From Eukaryota sp. TZLM1-RC (lineage: Eukaryota > Protista > Metamonada: BaSk clade), in assembly GCA_040285825.1 (NCBI GenBank), contig JAUPSS010000004.1, positions 2,956,550 through 3,020,549 on the forward strand: a stretch of 64,000 bases of DNA, given 5' to 3'. Below are positions 1-64,000 of the stretch, one piece after another (positions within the stretch are counted from its first letter, which is position 1; each line of letters starts with the position of its first letter). Position numbers and translations under genes: made by a program. The notes below the pieces were generated by a model. That model was given only the letters and a program-made list of their open reading frames with translations, did not search any database and was not told where the DNA came from.

Positions 1-407
1 AGACGTGCTGCGAGTAATTCAAATGGAGGATTAATTTTCAAAACAATCAATTGTTGAAAATAGTGGGCTAGATCATCAGCAATTTCAGGAGCACTGGAAC
101 ACGCTATTTTCAACAGATCAAAAGAAATTCCAGATGGGCCTGCTGCTTTCCCCTTTGGCAATTTTTGAATAGCTTTAAGAACTTCAATTGCAGTAATAGG
201 ATTTTCAATCCAAAAAGGACACACTTCAAGCTTGCTGCACTTGAAATTTTCTTGAGGATGCAACTTTTGAAGTTTTTCAAGGGTATCAGAGTTTGCATTA
301 GCCAAAGAAGAGGAAAACAAAGACTGCTTTGCGGCACCATAACGACCACGTAAGCACAATTTACGGCAAATTTTTGATTTTACAATTTTTCTATTTCCAA
401 ATTTTTT
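1..407 (-). mobile_element. Family A internal fragment (RT N-terminal part); resumes at 2308-2374
   Basis: Matches A; ATTTCCAAATTTTTT duplicated at 393-407 and 2308-2322. Confidence 0.85.
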
Positions 408-1400
408 TTTAAATTTAATTTTATTCTAAACCTATAAATCAACATCTAAAAAATCCATCTCTCCCAAAACAAAAACACTAGATGCAACTCTCTCATAGTG
501 AGATCCAAGAGAAAGCAAAGCATCAGAAACCATCTTCAACATCCCCTTAAAAATAGAAAACACAATTCTATTTTGCCAAAACAATCTATTGAAATTTCTG
601 CCAGTTCTTCTCTTTACAATCATTTCAAAATCATCAAAAAAACGTAAAGCAGTTGGTGCAAGTGAACCAAAAAGGGAAAATACAAATGGATACAAATTGT
701 ATTTTGCATGCTGTAGACTGGCCAATTTGGACAAAGGTTCATTGTATTTTTTGAATTTAAAATTTTCAGCATTTGAAAGGGGATTATGAATTTCAGAATT
801 AACAAGCCTTTCATTTGAGGCATTACAAGGATCAACAGACATTACATCCAATAAAATGAAGCTTCCATCTAATCCAGGTAATATGACATCACCTCTATTA
901 TTCTTATGAAAATCATTTTCAGCATCAAACAGATTTGACAACAAAGGTTCCAAGAAGGATTCAATTCTATGAGATTTACACATACAATATAACTGGTCTC
1001 TTACAGCATCATGAACCTTGCTTCTAAAAGTAATAAAATGTTTACAATTTAACAAATGAGTAGTTGTAATTTCTCGAGAACATTTACAAATTAAATTATG
1101 AGGTTATCAATTATCAGGCCAGATAAAGGAACGAAATCTCATATTCAGAGTCCAAGCAGAATCGGATAAGAGAGTACCATAAACTTGTGGAATTGTTGTT
1201 ACTAAGGCAGAAGAAGTACTGTCACACATATCTTGTAAAAGATTTGCAAAAGCGGGATTCTTTTTCTTGGCCAAGCCAAGTCTAACATCAAAATCCAAGC
1301 TTTCAAAAATCTTTGACAATTTTTGTTGAAGCTTTTTACAGCAAAACTGTAAATTAAATAGAGATCGGTTTGGAATTTCTTGAATTGATTGAGGAAAACA
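402..1400 (-). mobile_element. 5'-truncated family A copy (RLE end + tail)
   Basis: Poly(T) 402-410; ORF 432-1055. Confidence 0.9.
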
Positions 1401-2307
1401 TTTTTTTTTTAAAATTTAATTTTATTCTAAACCTATAAATCAACATCTAAAAAATCCATCTCTCCCAAAACAAAAACACTAGATGCAACTCTCTCATAGT
1501 GAGATCCAAGAGAAAGCAAAGCATCAGAAACCATCTTCAACATCCCCTTAAAAATAGAAAACACAATTCTATTTTGCCAAAACAATCTATTGAAATTTCT
1601 GCCAGTCCTTCTCTTTACAATCATTTCAAAATCATCAAAAAAACGTAAAGCAGTTGGTGCAAGTGAACCAAAAAGGGAAAATACAAATGGATACAAATTG
1701 TATTTTGCATGCTGTAGACTGGCCAATTTGGACAAAGGTTCATTGTATTTTTTGAATTTAAAATTTTCAGCATTTGAAAGGGGATTATGAATTTCAGAAT
1801 TAACAAGCCTTTCATTTGAGGCATTACAAGGATCAACAGACATTACATCCAATAAAATGAAGCTTCCATCTAATCCAGGTAATATGACATCACCTCTATT
1901 ATTCTTATGAAAATCATCTTCAGCATCAACCAGATTTGACAACAGAGGTTCCAAGAAGGATTCAATTCTATGAGATTTACACATACAATATAACTGGTCT
2001 CTTACAGCATCATGAACCTTGCTTCTAAAAGTAATAAAATGTTTACAATTTAACAAATGAGTAGTTGTAATTTCTCGAGAACATTTACAAATTAAATTAT
2101 GAGGTAAATTATCAGGCCAGATAAAGGAACGAAATCTCATATTCAGAGTCCAAGCAGAATCGGATAAGAGAGTACCATAAACTTGTGGAATTGTTGTTAC
2201 TAGGGCAGAAGAAGTACTGTCAGACATATCTTGTAAAAGATTTGCAAAAGCGGGATTCTTTTTCTTGGCCAAGCCAAGTCTAACATCAAAATCCAAGCTT
2301 TCAAAAA
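1401..2307 (-). mobile_element. 5'-truncated family A copy
   Basis: Poly(T) at 1401; ORF 1433-2296. Confidence 0.9.
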
Positions 2308-2374
2308 ATTTCCAAATTTTTTCTTAAAACAATTTTTGTTTTTTCTAGCAAAATATTTCCAGAAGGATGAAATA

Positions 2375-3063
2375 TTTTTTTTTAAATTTAATTTTATTCT
2401 AAACCTATAAATCAACATCTAAAAAATCCATCTCTCCCAAAACAAAAACACTAGATGCAACTCTCTCATAGTGAGATCCAAGAGAAAGCAAAGCATCAGA
2501 AACCATCTTCAACATCCCCTTAAAAATAGAAAACACAATTCTATTTTGCCAAAACAATCTGTTGAAATTTCTGCCAGTTCTTCTCTTTACAATCATTTCA
2601 AATTCATCCAAAAAACGTAAAGCAGTTGGTGCAAGTGAACCAAAAAGGGAAAATACAAATGGATACAAATTGTATTTTGCATGCTGTAGACTGGCCAATT
2701 TGGACAAAGGTTCATTGTATTTTTTGAATTTAAAATTTTCAGCATTTGAAAGGGGATTATGAATTTCAGAATTAACAAGCCTTTCATTTGAGGCATTACA
2801 AGGATCAACAGACATTACATCCAATAAAATGAAGCTTCCATCTAATCCAGGTAATATGACATCACCTCTATTATTCTTATGAAAATCATTTTCAGCTTCA
2901 AACAGATTTGACAACAGAGGTTCCAAGAAGGATTCAATTCTATGAGATTTACACATACAATATAACTGGTCTCTTACAGCATCATGAACCTTGCTTCTAA
3001 AAGTAATAAAATGTTTACAATTTAACAAATGAGTAGTTGTAATTTCTCGAGAACATTTACAAA
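2375..3063 (-). mobile_element. 5'-truncated family A copy
   Basis: Poly(T) at 2375; ORF 2405-3028. Confidence 0.9.
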
Positions 3064-3466
3064 AATTGGGTACGTATTTTGTTAAATTGTCTACAAAAAT
3101 TGTAAGTTAGGGAAGGAGGTAATGATCGCAGTAAATGAGTAATTTTTCCAGCATAACAAATTTTCAAAAGAAAAAACTTAAGATGTTTTTCCAATTCAAG
3201 AGTCTTTATGACTTCTAGCTCTTTTTTAATTGAATTTAAATAATTTTCAAGGCTGTCAAGTGTCTTTTCGGCGGAACCTAAATAGCAACCCAGAAAGCAG
3301 AAACTAGTTGAAGTATAATCAATATATGGAACTTCGAGGGAATTAATTATTAACTTAACATTTTTTCTAGAAATACAAAAACATTTTTGAACATTCAAAT
3401 CAAGACCTATGGATTGGTATAATGTAGCAGCTTCATTAGCAACCCTATTAATTGTACTTTCTGGAC
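3060..3466 (-). mobile_element. Family B internal fragment (RT end/thumb), fused to an A fragment at 3462-3528
   Basis: Matches B 8688-9093; TGGAC microhomology at the B/A junction. Confidence 0.85.
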
Positions 3467-3573
3467 AAAGGTTCATTGTATTTTTTGAATTTAAAATTTT
3501 CAGCATTTGAAAGGGGATTATGAATTTCATGTTGATAATTTTTGTTGAAGCTTTTTACAGCAAAACTGTAAAT

Positions 3574-5138: not shown

Positions 5139-7422
5139 TTTTTTTTGGTCCAAATTTTTTTTTGGTAAATAATTCTTTAAAACATAACATTCTAAACCTA
5201 TAAATCAACATCTAAAAAATCCATCTCTCCCAAAACAAAAACACTAGATGCAACTCTCTCATAGTGAGATCCAAGAGAAAGCAAAGCATCAGAAACCATC
5301 TTCAACATCCCCTTAAAAATAGAAAACACAATTCTATTTTGCCAAAACAATCTGTTGAAATTTCTGCCAGTTCTTCTCTTTACAATCATTTCAAATTCAT
5401 CCAAAAAACGTAAAGCAGTTGGTGCAAGTGAACCAAAAAGGGAAAATACAAATGGATACAAATTGTATTTTGCATGCTGTAGACTGGCCAATTTGGACAA
5501 AGGTTCATTGTATTTTTTGAATTTAAAATTTTCAGCATTTGAAAGGGGATTATGAATTTCAGAATTAACAAGCCTTTCATTTGAGGCATTACAAGGATCA
5601 ACAGACATTACATCCAATAAAATGAAGCTTCCATCTAATCCAGGTAATATGACATCACCTCTATTATTCTTATGAAAATCATTTTCAGCATCAAACAGAT
5701 TTGACAACAAAGGTTCCAAGAAGGATTCAATTCTATGAGATTTACACATACAATATAACTGGTCTCTTACAGCATCATGAACCTTGCTTCTAAAAGTAAT
5801 AAAATGTTTACAATTTAACAAATGAGTAGTTGTAATTTCTCGAGAACATTTACAAATTAAATTATGAGGTAAATTATCAGGCCAGATAAAGGAACGAAAT
5901 CTCATGTTCAGAGTCCAAGCAGAATCGGATAAGAGAGTACCATAAACTTGTGGAATTGTTGTTACTAAGGCAGAAGAAGTACTGTCACACATATCTTGTA
6001 AAAGATTTGCAAAAGCGGGATTCTTTTTTTCTTGGCCAAGCCAAGTCTAACATCAAAATCCAAGCTTTCAAAAATCTTTGACAATTTTTGTTGAAGCTTT
6101 TTACAGCAAAACTGTAAATTAAATAGAGATCGGTTTGGAATTTCTTGAATTGATTGAGGAAAACATTTGGTCCAAATTTGTGGCGGTAATTTTCAAGTTC
6201 ACAAGATAACTCATACAAATAGGGACTACAATTGGGGACTAACAGATGAGAATCATCAGGAAATCTACGAGAAAATTCATAAATAAAATTTTTGCCACCA
6301 CCCAAGAATGCTGATTGACACAAAATTGAAGATTTAGTAAAACCAATACCACCCAAATTTGCTGAAGAAAATAAATGGCTTTTCAACATTCCTGGTTCTA
6401 CATCCAATAAATCAGCAAAAATTCTGTTCTCAATGAATTAAAAGAACGACAAAAATCTAATGCTATGGAAGGAGCACAAGATCTCAAAATGTGGGTTATT
6501 CTCCCAGTGTAGCAAATTTTAAGCATGAAAAATTTAATATGCTTTTCTATATCTAAAGAAGAAATTGAATCAAGTTCAATTTTCATTTTTTCCAAAATAA
6601 CTTGCAATTCATTCTGAATTTGAGGCACATTTCCTAACCAACAACCAAGGAACTTAAAAGCATCACTACTATAATTAGTAAAAGGGACAATAGAATCGTT
6701 TATCACGAGGTCTTGAGCAGAAGAGCCAATCAGAAGGCATTTGCTGGCATTAAGATGAAGCCCAATATTTTCATATGAATCGGCAATTTCTTGAGCAACC
6801 AATTCTAGTAAATCAAATGAACCAATCAAGGATATATCATCCATATAAGCAACTATTTTTATAGAAGGGTATTTTTGCTTAATGATATTTAAAGGTTTGT
6901 GAATAGCTAAACAAAACAATAATGGGCCTAAAGGATCTCCCTGCTTCACTCCAGAAGATGATTTAAGACCAAATGAATTAAAAATTCAATCTGATTCTTT
7001 CCCATAAAAATGGTAGAAAGAACTCGATAGCTCAGGAAAATCAGATTTAATAACTTCAAAAATTGCTTCTCGCTTTACAGAATTAAAAGCATTTTTAAAG
7101 TCGAGATTAAAAATAAAATTATTTTCCTCTGCATTAAAAAAGGTATCAGAGGCAATAGCAGCAACAGAAGCACCATCAATTGTTTTGATTCCAAATTGAT
7201 GAGGATTCAAAAATGTAGAAGCTTTGTCTTTGACACGATCGAAGACAATTGATGCCAGCAAACGAGAAAGAGATTCACCAACAGCAATTGGGCGTATTCC
7301 ATCAGGTTTGATTCCGTTTCCAGGCTTTACTAGAGCAATCAGACGTGCTGCGAGTAATTCAAATGGAGGATTAATTTTCAAAACAATCAATTGTTGAAAA
7401 TAGTGGGCTAGATCATCAGCAA

Positions 7423-10400
7423 TTTTTTTTTAATATAATTTTAATTTATTATTAAACTACAGTCTAAAAGTCAATATCTTCAAAACAAGCTTCCACACCA
7501 TCAAACCTTACAGCAGCAGTGTTTTCATAATGTGCACTGACAGACATTAAAGCTTTCGAAATCATTTTAGGAATTGATTTGAAAATAGTAAAAACAATAC
7601 GATTTAGCCACAAGCGACGATCAAAACGCTTATTCATTCTTTTTTTCACAAGATTTTCAAAATCATCAATAAAATTCAAAGCAGTTTTTCCAAGACGACC
7701 ATACAACGATATAGCAAATGGGCAAATTTGGTAATCTACATGGCGAACATGTTTCAATTCTTTTAAAGGATTTGCATACTTTTTCCGTTTGTACAATTCG
7801 GAGTCATCAAGGGGGATACTTCGGATTGAGCATTTTTCAAGGCATTTTTCTTGCATACATCCACTGTTACGACATCAACAACATTCATGACATCATCAAA
7901 CGAGGGTACAACAACATCAGCACGTCGTTTTCCATATTCTGAATCTCTTACGCTTTCATTTATATCAAGAGACCTCAACAAAGGTTCTACAAAAGATTCA
8001 ATATGATAGGAATTACACATTGCATGGATTTGATCTCTGACTGCATCATGCAACGTAGAACGATAGGAAATATATCTATTGCAATTAAATAAATGTGATA
8101 ATGTCAAACCAGCTCCACATTTACAAAACAAATCATTGGGCAAATTACAAGGCCATAAATAACAACGCATTCTCATAGCAGTGGTCCATTGGTCGTCATT
8201 CAAAAATAGACCATAAATCTGGGGAATTTGATTTATCAAAACTGCAGATGAACTGTCCTTCAAATCAATCAAAAAAATTGGCAAAAGCAGGATTTTTCTT
8301 TCTTAGCCGTGCTAAGTCGAACAATAAAATCCTTGTTTTCAAAATTTTTCAAAAGATGTCGTTGGAGCTTTTTCAACGCAAATTTTAATGAATATAAACT
8401 TCTGTCTGGAATTTCTTGAATGGATATGGGGAAACATGATTGCCATAAGTCGGGAGATAAACTGGATATTTCTTCTCTTAAGTTATCCAGGAATATGCTA
8501 TTTGTATTTTCAAGAAGATTTTCGGCAAAGGATATCTTCTAGAGAATTCAATTACAAAATTTTTCCACCACCAATAAATGCAGCTTTGGTCAAATATTTT
8601 GATGAATTGAATCCAACACCGCCAAGTTGAACATCAGAAAAATATGATTTTTCAAAATTGATGGATCAACTGACATTAAATAAGCCAAAAATTGGGTACG
8701 TATTTTGTTAAATTGTCTACAAAAATTGTAAGTTAGGGAAGGAGGTAATGATCGCAGTAAATGAGTAATTTTTCCAGCATAACAAATTTTCAAAAGAAAA
8801 AACTTAAGATGTTTTTCCAATTCAAGAGTCTTTATGACTTCTAGCTCTTTTTTAATTGAATTTAAATAATTTTCAAGGCTGTCAAGTGTCTTTTCGGCGG
8901 AACCTAAATAGCAACCCAGAAAGCAGAAACTAGTTGAAGTATAATCAATATATGGAACTTCGAGGGAATTAATTGTTAACTTAACATTTTTTCTAGAAAT
9001 ACAAAAACATTTTTGAACATTCAAATCAAGACCTATGGATTGGTATAATGTAGCAGCTTCATTAGCAACCCTATTAATTGTACTTTCTGGACCAATACAA
9101 GAAATGTCATCCATGTAAGCTACCACTTGAAGGTCAGAATTTTCTTCTTTTAATTTTTTCAAAATTGGGTGAATTGCAAGACAAAAAAAGAAAGGACCTA
9201 AAGGGTCTCCTTGTTTAACTCCTGATAAAGAATCCAGATTAAAAGAATTAAAAATTAAATTAGATGAATTACCATAAAACCTATAAAAAAAGGTTTCGAG
9301 TTCAGGAAAATTTGATTTGATTTCTTTCCAAATTGAATCTCTTTTCACTGAATTGAAAGCATTTTTGAAATCAAGATTAAAAATGCAACTATTTTCGTGA
9401 CAATTGAAAAACAGATCAGATGTCAAAGCTGCAACTGAAGCTCCATCTATAGTTTTGATTCCATATTGGAATGGAGAAAAGTATTCTTTAGCTTTTGTTG
9501 AAACTCGATTAAAAATTACTGAAGACATCAAGCGATAAATGGCTTCACCAATGGCAATTGGGCGAACTTTTCCATTAGGTTTAGTTAAAGCCACTAACCG
9601 TGATGCACTTAATTCTTTAGGTGGAACAATTTTCATTATCAAAACATCTTGAAAAAAGGAACATAAATCTTTAATAATAAAGGCATTTTGGCGGCACACA
9701 GATTTCAGCATATCAAAAGTAATTCCAGATGGACCTGGAGCTTTTCCAGATGGAAGACGGAAAATGGCAGTTTCAACTTCTTTTTCAGAAAGTGGATTTT
9801 GTTTCCAAAATTGTGAAGCAGATGGTTTATCCAAATTAAGAAATTCAGCTGGATGCAGATCCACTAATTGATTTACAGTTTCATCAGTCACAGGAGCAAG
9901 GTCAGATGAGAACAGAGCGTTTTTCCCTGAACCATATCTCCCACGTAGCAAAAGTTTTCGTACAGTCTTATTCTTGGGTTGTTTCTTTGGAGTGAAAACC
10001 TTTTGGGGACGAGAACCTGATTTTTGTTCAAGGAAGAATTTCCAAATAGAAAATATATCCCATTCACCTTTTTTCAAAGCAAGACTGAATGTTCTAAACG
10101 CAACAGAAAAGGGAATGGAAGCCTTGGGACTGAGAACATTCGGAATCTTACATGGAGGCCGTAATGTATCAAGCGAGGAGCAAACATGGCATACATATAA
10201 ATTATTTTTTAAAATATATCTTTCAGCTTTTTCATTACAAATAGCACAATTATCAATTTGACTTGCTTCAAGGGGAATATCTAACATCACTGCATCATTG
10301 TCTTCTGCAGTGCACTCATCTTTGGGAGGTAAATTAAATTCTAAATTATGTAATTCAGCGGCAGCGGCGGTTACAGAATAAGAAATAGATGGATTTTGAT

Positions 10401-10741
10401 AATTTTCACATTTTTTAGAATTCTTTTTATGACCAACTTTATGACAAGATGAGCAACGGGGAACATTTTTTGAGAGTTTAGTGTTTTTTGTGGCACGCTG
10501 ATCATTTTTTGAATTTGAAATTTTTTGAGAAGAATTTCGAGCATAGCTTGGAGGGTGGGGAGAGTGGAGGAGTGAAGGGGATGAGCTTGATCTGACGGGT
10601 AGAACCTTCACTTGGGCATTCCAATCAGTATCGGAGTCACTATCTGCCTCTGGCATCGTTTAGGGAGAGACACAGTACAACTTTGACGCCAACACAGAAA
10701 GTGAAAAATGAGAGGCTTGACCAAGGGAGGGAGAAAAAAAA
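7423..10741 (-). mobile_element. Full-length family B non-LTR retrotransposon inserted into a family A copy
   Basis: Poly(T) at 7423 (3' tail); 5' T-run-CTCCCTCCC near 10740; host A is continuous (CAGCAATTT | AATTTCGGG), TSD about AATTT. Confidence 0.93.
7464..10656 (-). CDS. Family B RT-RLE polyprotein (~1065 aa), frameshifted in homopolymers
   Basis: ORFs 8590-10656, 7763-8284 and 7464-7856; CSSCHKVGH, CAIC..CHVC, APGPSG, RPIAIGE, QGDPLGP, YMDD, CKC..HLFNC, HDAVRD, RAD..VDV. Confidence 0.88.
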
Positions 10742-11093
10742 ATTTCGGGAGCACTGGAACACGCTATTTTTAACAGATCAAAAGAAATTCCAGATGGGCC
10801 TGCTGCTTTCCCCTTTGGCAATTTTTGAATAGCTTTAAGAACTTCAATTGCAGTAATAGGATTTTCAATCCAAAAAGGACACACTTCAGGCTTGCTGCAC
10901 TTGAAATTTTCTTGAGGATGCAACTTTTGAAGTTTTTCAAGGGTATCAGAGTTTGCATCAGCCAAAGAAGAGGAAAACAAAGACTGCTTTGCGGCACCAT
11001 AACGACCACGTAAGCACAATTTACGGCAAATTTTTGATTTTACAATTTTTCTATTTCCAAATTTTTTTTTAAATTTAATTTTATTCTAAACCT

Positions 11094-12559
11094 TTATTCA
11101 ATTTTTATTTATTTATTGAATTTGCACACTTGATTAAATTAAATCATAACTAATAGGACGACTATCATTAAACCAAGATTTCCTCTACAAAATCTTGATT
11201 TGCTTGCTGTCTAGCTAAAGCTTCTCTAATTCGATTGAAAAACCGCGGTAATCTATTAATAATGGCAAATTGAATCCGTGAACGCCATAAAAAAATATCA
11301 AATCTTTTCATTGTTTTTTCTTTCACCATTTTTTGGAAGTCATCCAAAAAAGTTTCTGCTTCAACTGATAATCTTCCATTTATCGAAAATGGAAAAGCAA
11401 TAAAAACCAGCTGTGTATTTCTATCGATATTTGCATCTTCAATTTCTTTATCATATTTTCTATGTTTTTCTTTTGCTTTAAAATCCAGAGCAGCCACAGG
11501 ATTAAGTTTTCTTCTGTGAACCAAAGTATCGTTTGCAACATTACATGAGACAAAGTCAACAATAGCTTCAGAATTATCAATCCAATCACAGTATACATCA
11601 CCTCTATCATCAGAACCAAAATTATTCAGAGAAAGTGTTTCTTTCAGCAGGGGCTCTTTGATACACGATATCCTTGCAGTTTGTGCCATATTGAAAACAG
11701 TGTCTCTAACAGCATCATGTAATGAAGAACGATAAGTTATCAATTTAGAGCAATTTAGAGCATGGCGCAAAGTGAGTTGAGGTGAATTCGAACAAATACA
11801 TTTTTCTTTTGATAATAATTGGTTAATGGGGATGTTCAAATATAATCTCATTTTTGTTACAAATGCTTCATTAGTAGCACACAATCCAAATCTTCGTGGT
11901 ACAATGGTTACAAAAAGTGAAGAATCTGACACCTTGTTTTCACAAACACCCTTTTCCAATAACAATGAGTGAAGATCTTGATTTAAAACAGCCGAGCTGC
12001 AAATATTATTATAAAGATCTTTTTCATACATTCCAGTCAATCTTTTCTGTAATGTTCGAAGAGTGTACTTCAAATTTAAAACATTTTTTTCTGGAATATT
12101 GCCATTGAATGATTGGGGAAAACATCGACCCCATTTTTCTACATCAATTCTTGAAATTTCTTCATTTAATGCAAAAACAGTGGAACTTTGCGTTGTCATC
12201 AATAAATCTTCCCAATCTGCAAATCTTTCGGAGAACTCAAAGATTGCATTTCTGCATCCACCAACAAAAGCACACGAGGTAAGAATAGAAGCCTTCGTCC
12301 ACCCTAAACCACCATATTGTGGACTAAGGTAAGCATGATCTGGAATTTGAAACATTTTACATCCCAGTAATTGAGACAGAACTTTTGCACGTAACTCATT
12401 AAACTTTTGAGCCAAAGGTCTAGTGACGAGAGGATTTGTAGATCGAAATATATGATTAAAATTGGAACTAAAACACAGTCTTATAATGGTAAATTTGATG
12501 TGTTTTTTTATATCTAAATTCATCATTCGGTCAATTTTGTCAGAAATTGAGTTCAACTT
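11094..12559 (-). mobile_element. 5'-truncated family C element inserted in the 3' UTR of an A copy (11062-11093 + 12560-12844), 10-bp TSD
   Basis: TTCTAAACCT at 11084-11093 and 12560-12569. Confidence 0.88.
11168..12556 (-). CDS. Family C C-terminal 462 aa (thumb, CCHC, RLE), uninterrupted but 5'-truncated
   Basis: GGLGW, CICSNSPQLTLRHALNC, HDAVRD, EP, RGD..VDF..KHRKY, PFSING. Confidence 0.87.
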   Translation of the reverse strand: MNSISDKIDRMMNLDIKKHIKFTIIRLCFSSNFNHIFRSTNPLVTRPLAQKFNELRAKVLSQLLGCKMFQIPDHAYLSPQYGGLGWTKASILTSCAFVGGCRNAIFEFSERFADWEDLLMTTQSSTVFALNEEISRIDVEKWGRCFPQSFNGNIPEKNVLNLKYTLRTLQKRLTGMYEKDLYNNICSSAVLNQDLHSLLLEKGVCENKVSDSSLFVTIVPRRFGLCATNEAFVTKMRLYLNIPINQLLSKEKCICSNSPQLTLRHALNCSKLITYRSSLHDAVRDTVFNMAQTARISCIKEPLLKETLSLNNFGSDDRGDVYCDWIDNSEAIVDFVSCNVANDTLVHRRKLNPVAALDFKAKEKHRKYDKEIEDANIDRNTQLVFIAFPFSINGRLSVEAETFLDDFQKMVKEKTMKRFDIFLWRSRIQFAIINRLPRFFNRIREALARQQANQDFVEEILV

Positions 12560-21937: not shown

Positions 21938-22002
21938 ATTACTGAAATTGAAGTTCTTAAAGCTATTCAAAAATTGCCAAAGGGGAAAGCAGCAGGCCCA
22001 TC

Positions 22003-51260: not shown

Positions 51261-52288
51261 TTTCACAAGATTTTCAAAATCATCAATAAAATTCAAAGCA
51301 GTTTTTCCAAGACGACCATACAACGATATAGCAAATGGGCAAATTTGGTAATCTACATGGCGAACATGCTTCAATTCTTTTAAAGGATTTGCATACTTTT
51401 TCCGTTTGTACAATTCGGAGTCATCAAGGGGGATACTTCGGATTGAGCATTTTCAAGGCATTTTTCTTGCATACATCCACTGTTACGACATCAACAACAT
51501 TCATGACATCATCAAACGAGGGCACAACAACATCAGCACGTCGTTTTCCATATTCTGAATCTCTTACGCTTTCATTTATATCAAGAGACCTCAACAAAGG
51601 TTCAACAAAAGATTCAATATGATAGGAATTACACATTGCATGAATTTGATCTCTGACTGCATCATGCAACGTAGAACGATAGGAAATATATCTATTACAA
51701 TTAAATAAATGTGATAATGTCAAACCAGCTCCACATTTACAAAAACAAATCATTGGGCAAATTACAAGGCCATAAATAACAACGCATTCTCATAGCAGTG
51801 GTCCATTGGTCGTCATTCAAAAATAGACCATAAATCTGGGGAATTTGATTTATCAAAACTGCAGATGAACTGTCCTTCAAATCAATCAAAATATTGGCAA
51901 AAGCAGGATTTTCTTTCTTAGCCGTGCTAAGTCGAACAATAAAATCCTTGTTTTCAAAATTTTTCAAAAGATGTCGTTGGAGCTTTTTCAACGCAAATTT
52001 TAATGAATATAAACTTCTGTCTGGAATTTCTTGAATGGATATGGGGAAACATGATTGCCATAAGTCGGGAGATAAACTGGATATTTCTTCTCTTAAGTTA
52101 TCCAGGAATATGCTATTTGTATTTTCAAGAAGATTTTCGGCAAAAGGATATCTTCTAGAGAATTCAAATACAAAATTTTTCCACCACCAATAAATGCAGC
52201 TTTGGTCAAATATTTTTGATGAATTGAATCCAACACCGCCAAGTTGAACATCAGAAAAAATATGATTTTTCAAAATTGATGGATCAAC

Positions 52289-53513
52289 TTTTTTTTTAAA
52301 TTTAATTTTATTCTAAACCTATAAATCAACATCTAAAAAATCCATCTCTCCCAAAACAAAAACACTAGATGCAACTCTCTCATAGTGAGATCCAAGAGAA
52401 AGCAAAGCATCAGAAACCATCTTCAACATCCCCTTAAAAATAGAAAACACAATTCTATTTTGCCAAAACAATCTGTTGAAATTTCTGCCAGTTCTTCTCT
52501 TTACAATCATTTCAAAATCATCCAAAAACGTAAAGCAGTTGGTGCAAGTGAACCAAAAAGGGAAAATACAAATGGATACAAATTGTATTTTTGCATGCTG
52601 TAGACTGGCCAATTTGGACAAAGGTTCATTGTATTTTTGAATTTAAAATTTTCAGCATTTGAAAGGGGATTATGAATTTCAGAATTAACAAGCCTTTCAT
52701 TTGAGGCATTACAAGGATCAACAGACATTACATCCAATAAAATGAAGCTTCCATCTAATCCAGGTAATATGACATCACCTCTATTATTCTTATGAAAATC
52801 ATTTTCAGCATCAAACAGATTTGACAACAAAGGTTCCAAGAAGGATTCAATTCTATGAGATTTACACATACAATATAACTGGTCTCTTACAGCATCATGA
52901 ACCTTGCTTCTAAAAAGTAATAAAATGTTTACAATTTAACAAATGAGTAGTTGTAATTTCTCGAGAACATTTACAAATTAAATTATGAGGTAAATTATCA
53001 GGCCAGATAAAGGAACGAAATCTCATATTCAGAGTCCAAGCAGAATCGGATAAGAGAGTACCATAAACTTGTGGAATTGTTGTTACTAAGGCAGAAGAAG
53101 TACTGTCACACATTTCTTGTAAAAGATTTGCAAAAGCGGGATCTTTTTCTTGGCCAAGCCAAGTCTAACATCAAAATCCAAGTTTTCAAAAATCTTTGAC
53201 AATTTTTGTTGAAGCTTTTTACAGCAAAACTGTAAATTAAATAGAGATCGGTTTGGAATTTCTTGAATTGATTGAGGAAAACATTTGGTCCAAATTTGTG
53301 GCGGTAATTTTTCAAGTTCACAAGATAACTCATACAAATAGGGACTACAATTGGGGACTAACAGATGAGAATCATCAGGAAATCTACGAGAAAATTCATA
53401 AATAAAATTTTTGCCACCACCCAAGAATGCTGATTGACACAAAATTGAAGATTTAGTAAAACCAATACCACCCAAATTTGCTGAAGAAAATAAATGGCTT
53501 TTCAACATTCCTG
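52289..53513 (-). mobile_element. 5'-truncated family A copy
   Basis: Poly(T) at 52289; ORFs 52319-53333. Confidence 0.88.
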
Positions 53514-54253
53514 TTGATGGATCAACAGACATTAAATAAGCCAAAAATTGGGTACGTATTTTGTTAAATTGTCTACAAAAATTGTAAGTTAGGGATGGAG
53601 GTAATGATCGCAGTAAATGAGTAATTTTTCCAGCATAACAAATTTTCAAAAGAAAAAACTTAAGATGTTTTTCCAATTCAAGAGTCTTTATGACTTCTAG
53701 CTCTTTTTTAATTGAATTTAAATAATTTTCAAGGCTGTCAAGTGTCTTTTCGGCGGAACCTAAATAGCAACCCAGAAAGCAGAAACTAGTTGAAGTATAA
53801 TCAATATATGGAACTTCGAGGGAAAAATTTTGTATTTGAATTCTCTAGAAGATATCCTTTTGCCGAAAATCTTCTTGAAACTACAAATAGCCTATTCCTC
53901 GATAACTTAAGAGAAGAAATATCCAGTTTATCTCCCGACTTATGGCAATCATGTTTCCCCATATCCATTCAAGAAATTCCAGGCAGAAGTTTGTATTCAT
54001 TAAAATTTGCGTTGAAAAAGCTCCAACGACATCTTTTGAAAAAATTTGAAAGCAAGGATTATATTGTTCGACTTAGCACGGCTAAGAAAAAAAATCCTGC
54101 TTTTGCAAATTTTTTGATTGATTTGAAGGACAGTTCATCTGCAGTTTTGATAAATCAAATTCCCCAGATTTATCGTCTATTTTTGAATGACGACCAATGG
54201 ACCACTGCTATGAGAATGCGTTGTTATTTATGGCCTTGTAATTTGCCCAATGA
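53514..54253. mobile_element. Family B with internal inversion: B(-) 53514-53823, B(+) 53821-54253
   Basis: Two nearly adjacent B segments in opposite orientation. Confidence 0.82.
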
Positions 54254-55869
54254 AAATCAGATTTAATAACTTCAAAAATTGCTTCTCTCTTTACAGAATT
54301 AAAAGCATTTTTAAAGTCGAGATTAAAAATAAAATTATTTTCCTCTGCATTAAAAAAGGTATCAGAGGCAATAGCAGCAACAGAAGCACCATCAATTGTT
54401 TTGATTCCAAATTGATGAGGATTCAAAAATGTAGAAGCTTTGTCTTTGACACGATCGAAGACAATTGATGCCAGCAAACGAGAAAGAGATTCACCAACAG
54501 CAATTGGGCGTATTCCATCAGGTTTGATTCCATTTCCAGGCTTTACTAAAGCAATCAGACGTGCAGCGAGTAATTCAAATGGAGGATTAATTTTCAAAAC
54601 AATTAATTGTTGAAAATAATGGGCTAGATCATCAGCAATTTCGGGAGCACTGGAACACGCTATTTTTAACAGATCAAAAGGAATTCCAGATGGGCCTGCT
54701 GCTTTCCCCTTTGGCAATTTTTGAATAGCTTTAAGAACTTCAATTGCAGTAATAGGATTTTCAATCCAAAAAGGACACACTTCAGGCTTGCTGCACTTGA
54801 AATTTTCTTGAGGATGCAACTTTTGAAGTTTTTCAAGGGTATCAGAGTTTGCATCAGCCAAAGAAGAGGAAAACAAAGACTGCTTTGCGGCACCATAACG
54901 ACCACGTAAGCACAATTTACGGCAAATTTTTGATTTTACAATTTTTCTATTTCCAAATTTTTTCTTAAAACAATTTTTGTTTTTTCTAGCAAAATATTTC
55001 CAGAAGGATGAAATATTCCACTTATTATTTTTCAATTCAGAAGTAAAATTTCTCATTTCCATTGAGAAGGGGATTGTGATGGCGGGACTTATTTCTACTG
55101 GGATCCGGATCGGGGGTCTTACGGTATCAACGGCTTTACAATTCGTACAAAACAGAAGTTTTCGACCATTTCGTGAATCTGCAACATCTTTTTTGCAAAA
55201 TGGACAACAAAAATTACTGTTTTCAGAAGGGGAAGAAGAGGGAACACTAGAAGCATTTAACTGTTGATCGTCAGAAACATTATTTTCAGCACCTTTCACA
55301 ACGGCATCAGCTGGAACAGAACATTCGAGAATTTGTTGAGCAGATTTTAATTCAATTTCTCTTTTTTGTTTCTCAGGGCATGGTCTCGAATTATGACCAC
55401 TGAAACCACAAATCGAACATTTTTTAGAACCTTTTAATGGCAATGGTTTCATTTTTTCAGTTATTTCTATTTTGTCAATTTGTGAGTTAAAAGTAGAAAT
55501 AGATTTTTGACTTTTTCCAGTTTCAGCTGGAGAAAACAAATTTCGAGAAACGGAGTTGGTAATAGAACGCGCAACAGAACGTAAGGAACGTAATGGTGGT
55601 TTTTGTGTGTTGTTTCTGGTACAATGATCAGTTTTTGAATTGAAATTTTTTTTGTGAAAAATTTCGAGCATAGCTTGCATTGTGGGGAGAGTGGTTAAGT
55701 GAAGGAGATGAGCTTGTTTTGACTGGTAGAATCTTTGCTTGGGCGTTCCAATCAGTATCAGAGTCACTATCAGCCAAAGGCATTGTTTTGACAGAGAAAC
55801 AGTACGACTTTGACGCCTTGACAGAAAGTGAAATATGAAAGGGTTGACTAAGGGAGGGAGAAAAAAAAA
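54252..55869 (-). mobile_element. Family A 5' half with complete, more diverged 5' end
   Basis: GGGAGGGAG-A9 at 55852-55869; CSICGFSGHNSRPC variant. Confidence 0.88.
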
Positions 55870-56092
55870 GAACATTTACAAATTAAATTATGAGGTAAAT
55901 TATCAGGCCAGATAAAGGAACGAAATCTCATATTCAGAGTCCAAGCAGAATCAGTTAAGAGAGTACCATAAACTTGGGGAATTGTTGTTACTAAGGCAGA
56001 AGAAGTACTGTCACACATATCTTGTAAAAGATTTGCAAAAGCGGGATTCTTTTTCTTGGCCAAGCCAAGTCTAACATCAAAATCCAAGCTTT
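55870..56092 (-). mobile_element. Family A short fragment
   Basis: ORF 55848-56087. Confidence 0.82.
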
Positions 56093-56380
56093 TGTTGAAC
56101 CACTTGTGCGAAGGTTGTCATCTGAAAATGAAGATGAAAATACTTTTGGGAAACGCCGTGCTGATTTAATTACCCCTGCGTCTGATGGTGTTATTAAAGT
56201 TGTTGATGTTGTTACTGTTGATGTTTGTAAAGACTCAGCAATTGATTTTGCTAAAAGAGACGAAACTCCACTTTGCTTTGCTGAAAAGAGCAAAATCAAA
56301 AAGTACAATGAACCCTTATCGCAGCTAGGACGTATTGAGCATGTCAAGTATCAGTTGGTTCCATTTGCTGTTTCTCTTTT
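56089..56380 (+). mobile_element. Family D RLE fragment (B-related but distinct)
   Basis: FVEPLVRRLSSENEDENTFGKRRADLITPASDGVIKVVDVVTVDVCK...KIKKYNEPL...PFAVSLF. Confidence 0.85.
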
Positions 56381-57653
56381 TAATTTAATTTATTTTCAAA
56401 ACCACAGTCTAAAAGTCAATATCTTCAAAACAAGCTTCCACACCATCAAACCTCGCAACAGCAATTTCTTCGTAATGTGCACTGACAGACATCAAAGCTT
56501 TCGAAATCATTTTAGGAATTGATTTGAAAATAGTAAAAACAATACGATTTAGCCACAAGCGACGATCAAAACGCTTATTCATTCTTTTTTTCACAAGATT
56601 TTCAAAATCATCAATAAAATTCAAAGCAGTTTTTCCAAGCCGACCATACAACGATATAGCAAATGGGCAAATTTGGTAATCTACATGGCGAACATGCTTC
56701 AATTCTTTTAAAGGATTTGCATACTTTTTCCGTTTGTACAATTCGGAGTCATCAAGGGGGGATACTTCGGATTGAGCATTTTTCAAGGCATTTTTCTTGC
56801 ATACATCCACTGTTACGACATCAACAACATTCATGACATCATCAAACGAGGGCACGACAACATCAGCACGTCGTTTTCCATATTCTGAATCTCTTACGCT
56901 TTCATTTATATCAAGAGACCTCAACAAAGGTTCTACAAAAGATTCAATATGATAGGAATTACACATTGCATGAATTTGATCTCTGACTGCATCATGCAAC
57001 GTAGAACGATAGGAAATATATCTATTACAATTAAATAAATGTGATAATGTCAAACCAGCTCCACATTTACAAAAACAAATCATTGGGCAAATTACAAGGC
57101 CATAAATAACAACGCATTCTCATAGCAGTGGTCCATTGGTCGTCATTCAAAAATAGACCATAAATCTGGGGAATTTGATTTATCAAAACTGCAGATGAAC
57201 TGTCCTTCAAATCAATCAAAAAATTGGCAAAAGCAGGATTTTCTTTCTTATAATAAAATAAACTTAATTTAAAAAAAAATTCTTAGCCGTGCTAAGTCGA
57301 ACAATAAAATCCTTGTTTTCAAAATTTTTCAAAAGATGTCGTTGGAGCTTTTTCAACGCAAATTTTAATGAATATAAACTTCTGTCTGGAATTTCTTGAA
57401 TGGATATGGGGAAACATGATTGCCATAAGTCGGGAGATAAACTGGATATTTCTTCTCTTAAGTTATCCAGGAATATGCTATTTGTATTTTCAAGAAGATT
57501 TTCGGCAAAAGGATATCTTCTAGAGAATTCAAATACAAAATTTTTTCCACCACCAATAAATGCAGCTTTGGTCAAATATTTTGATGAATTGAATCCAACA
57601 CCGCCAAGTTGAACATCAGAAAAAATATGATTTTTCAAAATTGATGGATCAAC
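56377..57653 (-). mobile_element. 5'-truncated family B copy containing a 29-bp mini-insertion (57251-57279)
   Basis: ORFs 56409-57083 and 57264-57698; TTCTTA TSD at 57245-57250 and 57280-57285. Confidence 0.88.
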
Positions 57654-58513: not shown

Positions 58514-58622
58514 TTTTTTTTTTCTCCCTCCCTTAGTCAACCCTTTCATATTTCACTTTCTGTCAAGGCGTCAAAGTCGTACTGTTTCTCTGTCAAAACG
58601 ATGCCTTTGGCTGATAGTGACT
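58514..58622 (+). promoter_or_regulatory. Conserved 5' leader shared by A and B (candidate internal promoter / structured RNA)
   Basis: Nucleotide-level conservation with B 10635-10741; pyrimidine start; covarying helix over the ATG. Confidence 0.5.
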
Positions 58623-61600
58623 CTGATACTGATTGGAACGCCCAAGCAAAGATTCTACCAGTCAGATCAAGCTCATCCACTCCACTTCCCCACTCTCCCC
58701 ACAATACAGGCTATGCTCGAAATTCATCTCAAAAAAATTCTCATTCAAAAACTGATCATTGTACCAGAAAAAACACAGAAAAACCACCATTACGTTCCTT
58801 GCGTTCTGTTGCGCGTTCTATTAACAACTCCGTTTCTCGAAATTTGTTTTCTCCAGCTGAAACTGCAAAAAGTCAAAAGTCTATTTCTACTTTTTACTCA
58901 AAAATTGACAAAATTGAAAGAACTGAAAAAATGAAACCACTGCCATTAAAAGGTTCTAAAAAATGTTCGATTTGTGGTATCAGTGGTCATAATTCGAGAA
59001 CGTGCCCTGAGAAACAAAAAAGAGAATTTGAATTAAAATCTGCTCAACAAATTCTCAAATGTTCTGTTCCAGCTGTTGCCGTTGTGAAAGGTGCTGAAAA
59101 TAATGTTTCTGACGATCAACAGTTAAATGCTTCTAGTGTTCCCTCTTCTTCCCCTTCTGAAAACAGTAATTTTTGTTGTCCATTTTGCAAAAAAGATGTT
59201 GCAAATTCACGAAATGGTCGAAAACTTCTGTTTTGTACGAATTGTAAAGCCGTTGATACCGTAAGACCCCCGATCCGGATCCCAGTAGAAATAAGTCCCG
59301 CCAGCACAATCCCCTTCTCAATGGAAATGAGAAATTTTACTTCTGAATTGAAAAATAATAAGTGGAATATTTCATCCTTCTGGAAATATTTTGCTAGAAA
59401 AAACAAAAATTGTTTTAAGAAAAAATTTGGAAATAGAAAAATTGTAAAATCAAAAATTTGCCGTATATTGTGCTTACGTGGTCGTTATGGTGCCGCAAAG
59501 CAGTCTTTGTTTTCCTCTTCTTTGGCTGATGCAAACTCTGATACCCTTGAAAAACTTCAAAAGTTGCATCCTCAAGAAAATTTCAAGTGCAGCAAGCCTG
59601 AAGTGTGTCCATTTTGGATTGAAAATCCTATTACTGCAATTGAAGTTCTTAAAGCTATTCAAAAATTGCCAAAGGGGAAAGCAGCAGGCCCATCTGGAAT
59701 TTCTTTTGATCTGTTAAAAATAGCGTGTTCCAGTGCTCCCGAAATTGCTGATGATCTAGCCCACTATTTTCAACAATTGATTGTTTTGAAAATTAATCCT
59801 CCATTTGAATTACTCGCAGCACGTCTGATTGCTTTAGTAAAGCCTGGAAACGGAATCAAACCTGATGGAATACGCCCAATTGCTGTTGGTGAATCTCTTT
59901 CTCGTTTGCTAGCATCAATTGTCTTCGATCGTGTCAAAGACAAAGCTTCTACATTTTTGAATCCTCATCAATTTGGAATCAAAACAATTGATGGTGCTTC
60001 TGTTGCTGCTATTGCCTCTGATACCTTTTTTAATGCAGAGGAAAATAATTTTATTTTTAATCTCGACTTTAAAAATGCTTTTAATTCTGTAAAGCGAGAA
60101 GTAATTTTTGAAGTTATTAAATCTGATTTTCCTGAGCTATCGAGTTTTTTCTACCATTTTTATGGGAAAGAATCAGATTTAATTTTTAATTCATTTGGTC
60201 TTAAATCATCTTCTGGAGTGAAGCAGGGAGATCCTTTAGGCCCATTATTGTTTTGTTTAGCTATTCACAAAACTTTAAATATCATTAAGCAAAAATACCC
60301 TTCTATAAAAATAGTTGCTTATATGGATGATATATCCTTGATTGGTTCATTTGATTTACTAGAATTGGTTGCTCAAGAAATTGCCGATTCATATGAAAAT
60401 ATTGGGCTTCATCTTAATGCCAGCAAATGCCTTCTGATTGGCTCTTCTGCTCAAGACCTCGTGATAAACGATTCTATTGTCCCTTTTACTAATTATAGTA
60501 GTGATGCTTTTAAGTTCCTTGGTTGTTGGTTAGGAAATGTGCCTCAAATTCAGAATGAATTGCAAGTTATTTTGGAAAAAATGAAAATTGAACTTGATTC
60601 AATTTCTTCTTTAGATATAGAAAAGCATATTAAATTTTTCATGCTTAAAATTTGCTACACTGGGAGAATAACCCACATTTTGAGATCTTGTGCTCCTTCC
60701 ATAGCATTAGATTTTTGTCGTTCTTTTAATTCATTGAGAACAGAATTTTTTGCTGATTTATTGGATGTAGAACCAGGAATGTTGAAAAGCCATTTATTTT
60801 CTTCAGCAAATTTGGGTGGTATTGGTTTTACTAAATCTTCAATTTTGTGTCAATCAGCATTCTTGGGTGGTGGCAAAATTTTATTTATGAATTTTCTCGT
60901 AGATTTCCTGATGATTCTCATCTGTTAGTCCCCAATTGTAGTCCCTATTTGTATGAGTTATCTTGTGAACTTGAAAAATTACCGCCACAAATTTGGACCA
61001 AATGTTTTCCTCAATCAATTCAAGAAATTCCAAACCGATCTCTATTTAATTTACAGTTTTGCTGTAAAAAGCTTCAACAAAAATTGTCAAAGATTTTTGA
61101 AAGCTTGGATTTTGATGTTAGACTTGGCTTGGCCAAGAAAAAGAATCCCGCTTTTGCAAATCTTTTACAAGATATGTGTGACAGTACTTCTTCTGCCTTA
61201 GTAACAACAATTCCACAAGTTTATGGTACTCTCTTATCCGATTCTGCTTGGACTCTGAATATGAGATTTCGTTCCTTTATCTGGCCTGATAATTTACCTC
61301 ATAATTTAATTTGTAAATGTTCTCGAGAAATTACAACTACTCATTTGTTAAATTGTAAACATTTTATTACTTTTAGAAGCAAGGTTCATGATGCTGTAAG
61401 AGACCAGTTATATTGTATGTGTAAATCTCATAGAATTGAATCCTTCTTGGAACCTTTGTTGTCAAATCTGTTTGATGCTGAAAATGATTTTCATAAGAAT
61501 AATAGAGGTGATGTCATATTACCTGGATTAGATGGAAGCTTCATTTTATTGGATGTAATGTCTGTTGATCCTTGTAATGCCTCAAATGAAAGGCTTGTTA

Positions 61601-61969
61601 ATTCTGAAATTCATAATCCCCTTTCAAATGCTGAAAATTTTAAATTCAAAAAAATACAATGAACCTTTGTCCAAATTGGCCAGTCTACAGCATGCAAAAT
61701 ACAATTTGTATCCATTTGTATTTTCCCTTTTTGGTTCACTTGCACCAACTGCTTTACGTTTTTTGGATGATTTTGAAATGATTGTAAAGAGAAGAACTGG
61801 CAGAAATTTCAACAGATTGTTTTGGCAAAATAGAATTGTGTTCTCTATTTTTAAGGGGATGTTGAAGATGGTTTCTGATGCTTTGCTTTCTCTTGGATCT
61901 CACTATGAGAGAGTTGCATCTAGTGTTTTTGTTTTGGGAGAGATGGATTTTTTAGATGTTGATTTATAG
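58601..61969 (+). CDS. Family A polyprotein (~1122 aa): CCHC knuckle, C4 finger, reverse transcriptase, CCHC + restriction-like endonuclease; two compensating homopolymer frameshifts
   Basis: Joins ORFs 58601-60928, 60847-61662 and 61565-61969; motifs CSICGISGHNSRTC, CPFC..CTNC, AAGPSG, RPIAVGE, LDFKNAFNSV, QGDPLGP, YMDD, CKC..HLLNC, HDAVRD, RGD..LDV..KKY; span 3369 nt = 1123 codons. Confidence 0.9.
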
Positions 61970-61975
61970 GTTTAG

Positions 61976-61981
61976 AATAAA
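61976..61981 (+). terminator. AATAAA polyadenylation signal in the very short A 3' UTR
   Basis: TAG-GTTTAG-AATAAA-ATTAAATTTT-poly(A); AATAAA also precedes the tails of B, C and E. Confidence 0.7.
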
Positions 61982-64000
61982 ATTAAATTTTAAAAAAAAA
62001 AAAAAAAGCGGGATTCTTTTTCTTGGCCAAGCCAAGTCTAACATCAAAATCCAAGCTTTCAAAAATCTTTGACAATTTTTGTTGAAGCTTTTTACAGCAA
62101 AACTGTAAATTAAATAGAGATCGGTTTGGAATTTCTTGAATTGATTGAGGAAAACATTTTTTTTTCTAAAACTTTTTATTCAACAACAAATATGAAATAC
62201 ACAATTAAAACTCCACATCCTCAAAACCTGCCTCCCCTACATCAAAACAATTAATCGCTAAAGATTCAGAAAATTTCCCAAAAGAAGATAGTGAATCAGA
62301 AAATAGAAAACATTTGGTCCAAATTTGTGGCGGTAATTTTTCAAGTTCACAAGATAACTCATACAAATAGGGATTTTTGGTTTTGAAAATAAATTAAATG
62401 AATGAAAACAAAAAAAAACAAATAGGGACTACAATTGGGGACTAACAGATGAGAATCATCAGGAAATCTACGAGAAAATTCATAAATAAAATTTTTGCCA
62501 CCACCCAAGAATGCTGATTGACACAAAATTGAAGATTTAGTAAAACCAATACCACCCAAATTTGCTGAAGAAAATAAATGGCTTTTCAACATTCCTGGTT
62601 CTACATCCAATAAATCAGCAAAAAATTCTGTTCTCAATGAATTAAAAGAACGACAAAAATCTAATGCTATGGAAGGAGCACAAGATCTCAAAATGTGGGT
62701 TATTCTCCCAGTGTAGCAAATTTTAAGCATGAAAAATTTAATATGCTTTTCTATATCTAAAGAAGAAATTGAATCAAGTTCAATTTTCATTTTTTCCAAA
62801 ATAACTTGCAATTCATTCTGAATTTGAGGCACATTTCCTAACCAACAACCAAGGAACTTAAAAGCATCACTACTATAATTAGTAAAAGGGACAATAGAAT
62901 CGTTTATCACGAGGTCTTGAGCAGAAGAGCCAATCAGAAGGCATTTGCTGGCATTAAGATGAAGCCCAATATTTTCATATGAATCGGCAATTTCTTGAGC
63001 AACCAATTCTAGTAAATCAAATGAACCAATCAAGGATATATCATCCATATAAGCAACTATTTTTATAGAAGGGTATTTTTGCTTAATGATATTTAAAGTT
63101 TTGTGAATAGCTAAACAAAACAATAATGGGCCTAAAGGATCTCCCTGCTTCACTCCAGAAGATGATTTAAGACCAAATGAATTAAAATTAAATCTGATTC
63201 TTTACCATAAAAATGGTAGAAAAAACTCGATAGCTCAGGAAAATCAGATTTAATAACTTCAAAAATTGCTTCTCGCTTTACAGAATTAAAAGCATTTTTA
63301 AAGTCGAGATTAAAAATAAAATTATTTTCCTCTGCATTAAAAAAGGTATCAGAGGCAATAGCAGCAACAGAAGCACCATCAATTGTTTTGATTCCAAATT
63401 GATGAGGATTCAAAAATGTAGAAGCTTTGTCTTTGACACGATCGAAGACAATTGATGCTAGCAAACGAGAAAGAGATTCACCAACAGCAATTGGGCGTAT
63501 TCCATCAGGTTTGATTCCGTTTCCAGGCTTTACTAAAGCAATCAGACGTGCTGCGAGTAATTCAAATGGAGGATTAATTTTCAAAACAATCAATTGTTGA
63601 AAGTAGTGGGCTAGATCATCAGCAATTTCGGGAGCACTGGAACACGCTATTTTTAACAGATCAAAAGAAATTCCAGATGGGCCTGCTGCTTTCCCCTTTG
63701 GCAATTTTTGAATAGCTTTAAGAACTTCAATTGCAGTAATAGGATTTTCAATCCAAAAAGGACACACTTCAGGCTTGCTGCACTTGAAATTTTCTTGAGG
63801 ATGCAACTTTTGAAGTTTTTCAAGGGTATCAGAGTTTGCATCAGCCAAAGAAGAGGAAAACAAAGACTGCTTTGCGGCACCATAACGACCACGTAAGCAC
63901 AATTTACGGCAAATTTTTGATTTTACAATTTTTCTATTTCCAAATTTTTTTCTTAAAACAATTTTTGTTTTTTCTAGCAAAATATTTCCAGAAGGATGAA

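Follow-up and report, generated by a model that had tools for sequence, protein, structure and literature searches.

We analysed a 64,000-bp stretch of the genome of Skoliomonas litria strain TZLM1-RC (hereafter the window), which lies at about 2,956,550-3,020,549 of contig JAUPSS010000004.1 (6,907,603 bp; assembly GCA_040285825.1), in the same orientation and 43% of the way along the contig. The window consists almost wholly of long interspersed nuclear elements (LINEs) that encode a restriction-like endonuclease (RLE). It is probably one of many RLE-LINE nests in a repeat-rich genome, and no mark singles it out as a centromere. S. litria is a free-living, anaerobic metamonad with a genome of 31.9 Mb in 16 contigs, of which 55.4% is repetitive, with a guanine-cytosine (GC) content of 35.8% and 15,224 proteins; the assembly was built from Nanopore reads (41x) with Illumina polishing (PMC11316075). 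For Skoliomonas sp. GEMRC, six telomere-to-telomere chromosomes are available (PMC11316075).

Five LINE families fill the window

Self-comparison by BLAST showed that 95.8% of the window matches other parts of itself, mostly at 95-99.8% identity, and five LINE families, named A to E, account for 98% of its DNA. Family representatives were cut from the window itself: A at 47780-51260, B at 7412-10742 (minus strand), C at 11074-12559 (minus strand), D at 56093-56383 and E as a 147-bp 3' end at 40336-40482. On the basis of these representatives, 75 fragments of families A-E and of one further piece, U, annotate 99.3% of the window, in the following proportions.

Family A: 71.5% of the window, 3,481 bp at full length
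Family B: 21.4%, 3.3 kb
Family C: 4.5%
Family D: 0.5%
Family E: 0.7%
Piece U: 1.0%, 617 bp, outside the LINE families

The fillers between fragments total 458 bp, 147 bp of which are B. Both orientations are present, with 73% of the element DNA on the minus strand. Every open reading frame (ORF) of at least 200 amino acids in the window lies within an element, and scans of the window returned no tRNA genes, no Rfam families, no TTAGGG runs and no short-period satellites. The GC content of the nest is 32-33%, against 35.8% for the genome. The nest measures at least 77 kb: it continues rightward to window position 77,160, the 13 kb past the window end belong to the same families over 95% of their length, and neither edge was reached. 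When the longest ORF was used as the query of a protein search, dozens of TZLM1-RC proteins were found at 83-99% identity. One of them, P0020, is encoded without any mismatch at window 54211-55875 and maps to 3,010,757-3,012,424 of JAUPSS010000004.1, which places the window on this contig; two additional look-ups agree with the placement.

A first-pass annotation of this DNA had estimated that about 63 of the 64 kb were element DNA, in both orientations and free of host genes, and the shares given above bear this out. Its count of four to five families was also right, but the families are not evenly mixed, as A alone takes up 71.5%.

The elements are R2-group LINEs with a restriction-like endonuclease

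Family A has one long frame, in which a gag-type zinc knuckle and a second, four-cysteine (C4) motif are followed by a reverse transcriptase (RT), a C-x-C-x7-H-x3-C (CCHC) motif and then R, D, D and K motifs. The copies on which this description draws, together with the full-length B copy, are as follows.

47780-51260, plus strand: full-length A, 3,481 bp, inserted in minus-strand B (flanks B:3097-3331 and B:2072-3099) with a T-rich target-site duplication (TSD) of about 3 bp
49127-49795, plus strand: RT domain of this A copy, RVT_1 at E = 2.9e-23, residues 421-643 of the ORF at 47867-50194
58514-61997, plus strand: second full-length A, with one substitution relative to the first, inserted in minus-strand A; its TSD of 23-27 bp, starting GCGGGATTC, is visible on both sides
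60847-61662, plus strand: C-terminal ORF piece of A with CCHC and restriction-like endonuclease, including the invariant C, C, H, C, H, D and K columns
7426-10742, minus strand: full-length B, within minus-strand A at A:1229-1233 and in the same orientation, with its RT ORF at 8590-10656

RVT_1 was detected by Pfam in six window ORFs (E = 2e-24 to 3e-23), and the closest PDB sequence matches of the RT were R2 and L1 ORF2 proteins. Pfam gave only RVT_1 and a weak zinc knuckle, with no apurinic/apyrimidinic (AP) endonuclease domain; nor did it find a chromatin-reading domain such as a chromodomain or PHD finger in the element protein. No C2H2 finger was detected at the N-terminus, which carries the gag-type zinc knuckle and the C4 motif instead.

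An intact relative at 89% identity, P0004, with an uninterrupted ORF of 1,099 amino acids, lies elsewhere in the genome. For 20 relatives, among them environmental sequences with identities of 14-25%, the C-terminal 400 residues were aligned, and C183, C185, H193, C197, H208, D263 and K293 were invariant across these 20 diverse sequences. Searched by sequence against the PDB, the C-terminal 320 amino acids had no match, and the R2-type nuclease became visible by fold search only. An AlphaFold model of the C-terminal part of P0004 (mean predicted local distance difference test score 73, above 85 across the nuclease) gave seven R2 structures as its only significant PDB fold matches (E = 3e-6 to 8e-4), with PD-(D/E)xK cap-snatching nucleases next in rank. 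The copies also bear the footprints of target-primed reverse transcription, namely complete 3' ends with poly-A, ragged 5' truncation and variable TSDs. With a LINE-type RT, a C-terminal CCHC and PD-(D/E)xK nuclease, a single ORF and these footprints, the window elements are RLE-type LINEs of the R2 group, and the RLE type assigned to them at first pass stands.

The nearest relatives outside Skoliomonas, found by HMMER search and cluster look-up, are 27-34% identical and comprise one Cafeteria protein besides environmental or metagenomic proteins. A protein atlas search of the element protein returned RVT_1 clusters only. Elements of the CRE clade (CRE1/2, SLACS and CZAR; MoTeR and Cnl1) are likewise RLE-type LINEs of protists and fungi, but they occupy one site in spliced-leader genes or telomere repeats, whereas the Skoliomonas nest shows at least 23 sites, none in such genes. 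The first-pass annotation had called the elements CRE-like, but they lack the site specificity by which characterised CRE elements are defined. No insertion at one specific site of the CRE type was seen in the window: the 23 distinct positions lie inside LINE copies, and neither a spliced-leader or RNA gene nor a telomere repeat is present. A sequence link of the window elements to CRE was not found, no reference CRE sequences being among those compared.

RLE LINEs form the clades CRE, R2, R4, NeSL and HERO, and HERO holds many non-specific families (PMC4640811, Kojima & Jurka 2015), so the loss of a fixed target has precedent among RLE LINEs. By published description, the R2 group, and HERO in particular, resembles the window elements in having a single ORF with RT, CCHC and PD-(D/E)xK RLE, a poly-A tail, 5' truncation and variable TSDs, and many HERO families likewise have no strict target. 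The window elements differ from this group in their gag-type zinc knuckle and C4 motif and in the coexistence of five families inserted into one another.

The nest is young and its copies are nested

Copies of A differ from their representative by 0.03-0.8% substitutions, apart from a few older ones at 1.4-4%, and copies of B by 0.4-1.4%, with one fragment at 2.5%. Indels among copies fall nearly all within homopolymer runs. Judged by this divergence, the nest is very recent. A mutation bias resembling repeat-induced point mutation was considered and ruled out, as transitions make up only about half of the substitutions.

The 74 junctions between fragments fall into 61 distinct classes, so most junctions are independent events. 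TSD lengths across the nest are about 3, 5, 10, 12, 21 and 27 bp; an A-in-A insertion has a 12-bp TSD, and stacked A copies at A:901-921 have one of 21 bp. The nesting proposed at first pass therefore corresponds to real, young nested copies, but part of the pattern is segmental duplication at the DNA level.

The full-length A at 47780-51260 starts with oligo(T)14 and CTCCCTCCC and ends with A6, and its long ORF is split at two homopolymer runs. Only four public runs matched, all of DNA type and represented by short contigs, and no RNA run containing the elements was found; the contigs were compared with the assembly over 5.5 kb (window 47000-52500). Contigs of public DNA runs carry an additional A at 50140 and lack one base at 50429. 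It is precisely at these two positions that the frame is broken. Three DNA runs showed further single-base homopolymer differences from the assembly at 48132, 48156, 50914, 50992 and 51022. These short-read contigs merge all copies and thus provide evidence on family A rather than on the single copy at 47780-51260. As they contradict both frame breaks, the breaks most likely stem from Nanopore errors left in the assembly, and the family itself is probably intact and active. The published assembly probably retains Nanopore homopolymer errors inside repeats, and such errors disguise intact elements as broken ones.

Contig k-mer depth across A, in rough values, rises from about 40 in the 5' part to about 190 (run X1) or 300-700 (run X3) in the 3' part, as expected if most genomic copies are 5'-truncated. 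Run X2, from the same study and labelled as another organism, contains family A at about 99.6% identity; it probably represents the same culture, or else a very close strain, filed under a second name.

Insertion sites share a weak motif and exact hotspots

The window and eight further loci yielded 45 intact A/B 3' ends. They reduced to 35 distinct flanks and then to 23 distinct positions mapped in A, B or C, in either orientation. The base preceding the target A-run was C in 11 of the 23 sites (25% expected), the first base past the run was T in 18 (50% expected) and the second was T in 13 (33% expected). The top-strand sequence at the nick can thus be written approximately as C / A(1-4) T T, a weak preference. 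Two exact positions were hit independently and count as hotspots: A:1290, used by B in the window and by A on contig JAUPSS010000001.1, and A:2487, used by both A and E. Given about 16,600 site-orientation combinations, chance would produce only about 0.02 such coincidences.

The motif is too short to explain the nests alone. Together with the exact hotspots, it argues against a purely sequence-blind targeting through chromatin only. The first-pass annotation had seen no fixed target repeat, which agrees with the 23 mapped positions. It had further proposed that the elements are directed to chromatin rather than to a sequence; no single target sequence exists, as this claim would have it, but the claim was too strong in view of the weak C-A(1-4)-TT pattern and the two hotspots shared between families. 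Targeting of tRNA or other RNA genes was also ruled out, the window containing neither tRNA genes nor Rfam families.

Dense nests recur within single contigs

Eleven other places in the genome, chosen through protein hits and not as a genome-wide map, were examined for the same families. The share of each locus covered by A-E and U is given below, where contig 4 is JAUPSS010000004.1 (6.9 Mb), contig 1 is JAUPSS010000001.1 (4.04 Mb) and contig 2 is JAUPSS010000002.1.

L007, contig 4, 0.97 Mb: 24%, next to a long terminal repeat (LTR) retrotransposon
L012, contig 4, right of the window to 77,160: 95%, continuation of the nest
L009, contig 4, 3.76 Mb: 56%, seven-fold tandem array of an 806-bp internal A fragment
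L008, contig 4, 5.73-5.75 Mb: 89%, with A, B, C and D at 96-99.9% identity
L006, contig 1, 0.07-0.09 Mb: 18%, old fragments (88-91%) between host genes
L011, contig 1, 1.616-1.639 Mb: 72%, boundary adjoining a GAPDH gene
L013, contig 1, 1.625-1.646 Mb: 92%
L001, contig 1, 1.722-1.745 Mb: 84%
L010, contig 1, 3.49-3.52 Mb: 74%
L005, contig 2, 0.50-0.525 Mb: 33%, small cluster flanked by Dus and RalGAP genes

Dense young nests occur at least twice on each of the two sampled contigs 4 and 1, at distances of 2.7 and 1.8 Mb, respectively, and RT proteins of the window families are found on ten contigs. Intergenic copies are 88-95% identical to the A and C representatives, whereas the youngest copies seen (0.03-0.8% divergence) are in nests, a contrast that comes from a small and biased sample. 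Exact-product look-ups for young copies across the genome returned already-known places only, exact matching being too strict given the homopolymer indels.

Selective tolerance and weak site preference as the probable cause of nesting

We infer that the copies are concentrated by selective tolerance and weak sequence preference rather than by recognition of centromeric chromatin. Each of the five families would make one long protein with a zinc knuckle, RT, CCHC and R2-type RLE, and would be copied by target-primed reverse transcription. The RLE would nick the bottom strand at loose sites whose top-strand sequence is C-A(1-4)-TT, the 3' T-run freed on the bottom strand would pair with the poly-A tail of the element RNA, and the resulting copy would often be 5'-truncated. 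The elements' own sense strand, being A-rich, would offer many such sites. Insertion into an old copy would be harmless in a genome whose gene space is very compact, and new copies would accumulate in old ones, with segmental and tandem duplication enlarging the pile further.

About 14 Mb of non-repeat DNA with up to 15,224 genes amounts to roughly one gene per kb (PMC11316075), so that an insertion outside repeats would nearly always meet a gene or a short flank. More than half of random insertions would fall in repeats anyway, and mainly these would survive, which would yield nests without special targeting. The nest would then be a well-documented case of a common phenomenon, transposons piling together in a repeat-rich genome. 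The window also documents that five R2-type LINE families, all apparently active, coexist as a guild in a free-living metamonad of a deep-branching lineage; these families have abandoned strict site specificity but retain a weak nick-site preference and have hotspots in common.

Several points weigh against this explanation. The window holds RLE LINEs only, although the genome has LTR retrotransposons (L007), and random insertion with selection predicts a more mixed nest; this purity hints at some self-preference or at reinsertion close by, and guidance by chromatin is conceivable. A transposon-cluster centromere is likewise predicted to show young, nested insertions of a single type of element (bioRxiv 10.64898/2026.09.17.752431). 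The sample of other loci is small (the 11 places above) and was picked via protein hits, and two chromosomes could have been misjoined in the 6.9-Mb contig.

Another possibility is that the LINEs are guided to a chromatin state (heterochromatin or silenced repeats), or reinsert near their source, and that the nests are self-reinforcing landing zones without centromere function. We regard this as doubtful, though deserving attention. It would account for a nest built purely of RLE LINEs despite other transposable element (TE) classes in the genome, for the location of the youngest copies in nests and of older copies between genes, and for the many target positions that lack a long common motif. 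Against it, the age contrast carries the sampling bias noted above, and the weak motif, the exact hotspots and the 73% same-strand bias point to recognition at the DNA level. The lack of a chromodomain or PHD finger among the Pfam matches of the protein likewise speaks against chromatin guidance. A looser reading of the nest as a heterochromatin island is possible.

Comparison with LINE-built centromeres and telomeric LINEs

Zepp and ZeppL in green algae and Grem-LINE1 in Mucor are elements of the L1-like, AP-endonuclease type that build or invade centromeres. The Skoliomonas LINEs differ from these algal and Mucor elements in being of the RLE type. Celine is a LINE of poplar centromeres (PMC11288735), and transposon-cluster centromeres are predicted in a preprint to be made up of young copies, nested in one another, of a family that seeks out centromeres (bioRxiv 10.64898/2026.09.17.752431). 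All of these share with the Skoliomonas nest the appearance of gene-poor clusters of young nested LINEs from which TE-derived tandem repeats are arising. LINE centromeres, however, form one cluster per chromosome and are supported by CENH3 or Hi-C, whereas the Skoliomonas nests number at least two dense ones per contig and are known from sequence alone.

The first-pass annotation had proposed that the window may constitute the centromere, which predicts one dense cluster per chromosome and hardly any copies elsewhere. This prediction fails if the contig joins are taken as assembled, as each sampled contig has at least two dense nests and copies also lie between host genes. In its full form, the proposal holds that the nest is a transposon-cluster centromere, that the LINEs integrate into and carry centromeric chromatin, and that the other nests are misjoined centromeres or non-centromeric by-products. 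The window does contain young nested copies in a gene-free domain, as described for such centromeres. The nest is also at least 77 kb long and AT-richer than the genome, lies mid-contig (43%), has TE-derived tandem units arising and fits the look predicted in the preprint; and since the second-largest contig is little more than half as long as the 6.9-Mb one, a misjoin is conceivable. Nevertheless, the recurrence of dense nests 2.7 and 1.8 Mb apart, the intermediate clusters and the presence of the same families between host genes make a centromere unlikely here. In a mixed version, which seems to us quite unlikely, the large nests are chromatin-defined landing zones of which one per true chromosome is centromeric, the extra nests being misjoins or satellite heterochromatin.

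If one nest per chromosome were centromeric, the barthelonid-skoliomonad lineage would have its first centromere candidate and, as far as literature searches reach, this would be the first centromere built of RLE LINEs; the range of LINE-built centromeres would then include RLE elements and Metamonada. The nests provide a list of candidate regions for centromere work in Skoliomonas.

Telomere-associated LINEs are described in Giardia, where GilM and GilT adjoin telomere repeats and point to the chromosome end (Arkhipova & Morrison 2001, as cited in PMC10999387). Going by that secondary account, they resemble the window elements as LINEs of a related metamonad lineage that form arrays away from genes, and differ in that the Skoliomonas nest lies about 3 Mb inside its contig, has no telomere repeats and contains both orientations. 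The same facts set aside the subtelomeric location that the first-pass annotation had named as an alternative: the nearest contig end is about 3 Mb away, and no TTAGGG run was found in the window.

The arrangement could in part be an assembly artefact, with near-identical copies collapsed, expanded or misjoined, possibly masking subtelomeric arrays of the GilM/GilT kind. The assembly rests on Nanopore reads at 41x with visible homopolymer errors, telomeres are reported for no S. litria contig (PMC11316075), and no short-read contig spanned the 5.5 kb tested. We consider this explanation very unlikely, as 61 junction classes with clean TSDs are hard to produce by misassembly, and neither telomere repeats in or beside the nest nor a single orientation nor a nearby contig end was observed. 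Selective tolerance with weak site preference remains our preferred account.

Individual elements and duplicated blocks

The remaining annotated features of the window are the following.

404-3063, minus strand: three 5'-truncated A copies head to tail (A:2487-3481, 2560-3481 and 2798-3481), stacked insertions at A:853-921
11074-12559, minus strand: 3' part of C, 1.5 kb, near the 3' end of an A copy; 30-48% identity by tblastx to the RLE-side regions of A and B
22003-22697 and 29641-30333: further C pieces, 0.69 kb each
19744-23367 and 28969-32595: inverted segmental duplication of 3.6 kb, 99.3% identity, with the same A/C/A junctions
25077-25693, plus strand: piece U, abutting the 5' end of an A copy, with two 63-bp direct repeats
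35568-38324 and 45024-47782: direct segmental duplication of 2.76 kb, 99.8% identity, spanning A/B/A/B junctions
39348-43072, minus strand: 1.36-kb composite unit (A 3' part, E end and A pieces) in about 2.7 tandem copies; 39348-41698 and 40710-43072 are 98.4% identical
40336-40482, minus strand: E 3' end, 147 bp plus poly-A, in A at A:2487-2496 with a 10-bp TSD; duplicates at 41698-41844 and 62159-62305
56093-56383, plus strand: D fragment, 291 bp, with about 50% amino-acid identity to A and B

A third, partial copy of the 1.36-kb composite unit lies at 62004-62417. Beyond the window, D copies occur at 95-97% identity in L001, L005, L007 and L008, and E copies in L005, L010 and L011. At L001:3329-3539, within a nest of a different contig, the first 211 bp of U are found again at 97% identity, which marks U as repeated DNA; the 185-amino-acid ORF on its minus strand had no Pfam match, and U may be a transduced leader or a non-autonomous element.

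Three observations concern the other loci. In L009 (11644-17932, at about 3.76 Mb), seven head-to-tail repeats of the 806-bp fragment A:2026-2822, with identities of 96.5-97.6%, amount to an incipient LINE-derived satellite. An LTR retrotransposon with RT, RNase H and integrase ORFs stands beside A, C and D copies in L007 (1126-5351, at about 0.97 Mb), so other TE classes mix with LINEs outside the big nests. In L011 (19282-22854, at about 1.617-1.620 Mb), the nest has a sharp boundary: A and B copies stop within about 150 bp of the GAPDH gene, beyond which lies a WD40 gene. Such a boundary could serve to study nests that abut housekeeping genes.

The 5' ends of A and B are alike. Over the first 260 bp or so, the two families are 85% identical (10481-10742 and 47781-48042), compared with about 65% over the remainder, which suggests that they share or have exchanged a 5' module, such as a promoter or leader. 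At 47766-47788, 58514-58532 and 10735-10751, each full-length A or B copy opens with an oligo(T) run whose length varies (14, 10 and 9), and CTCCCTCCC comes next.

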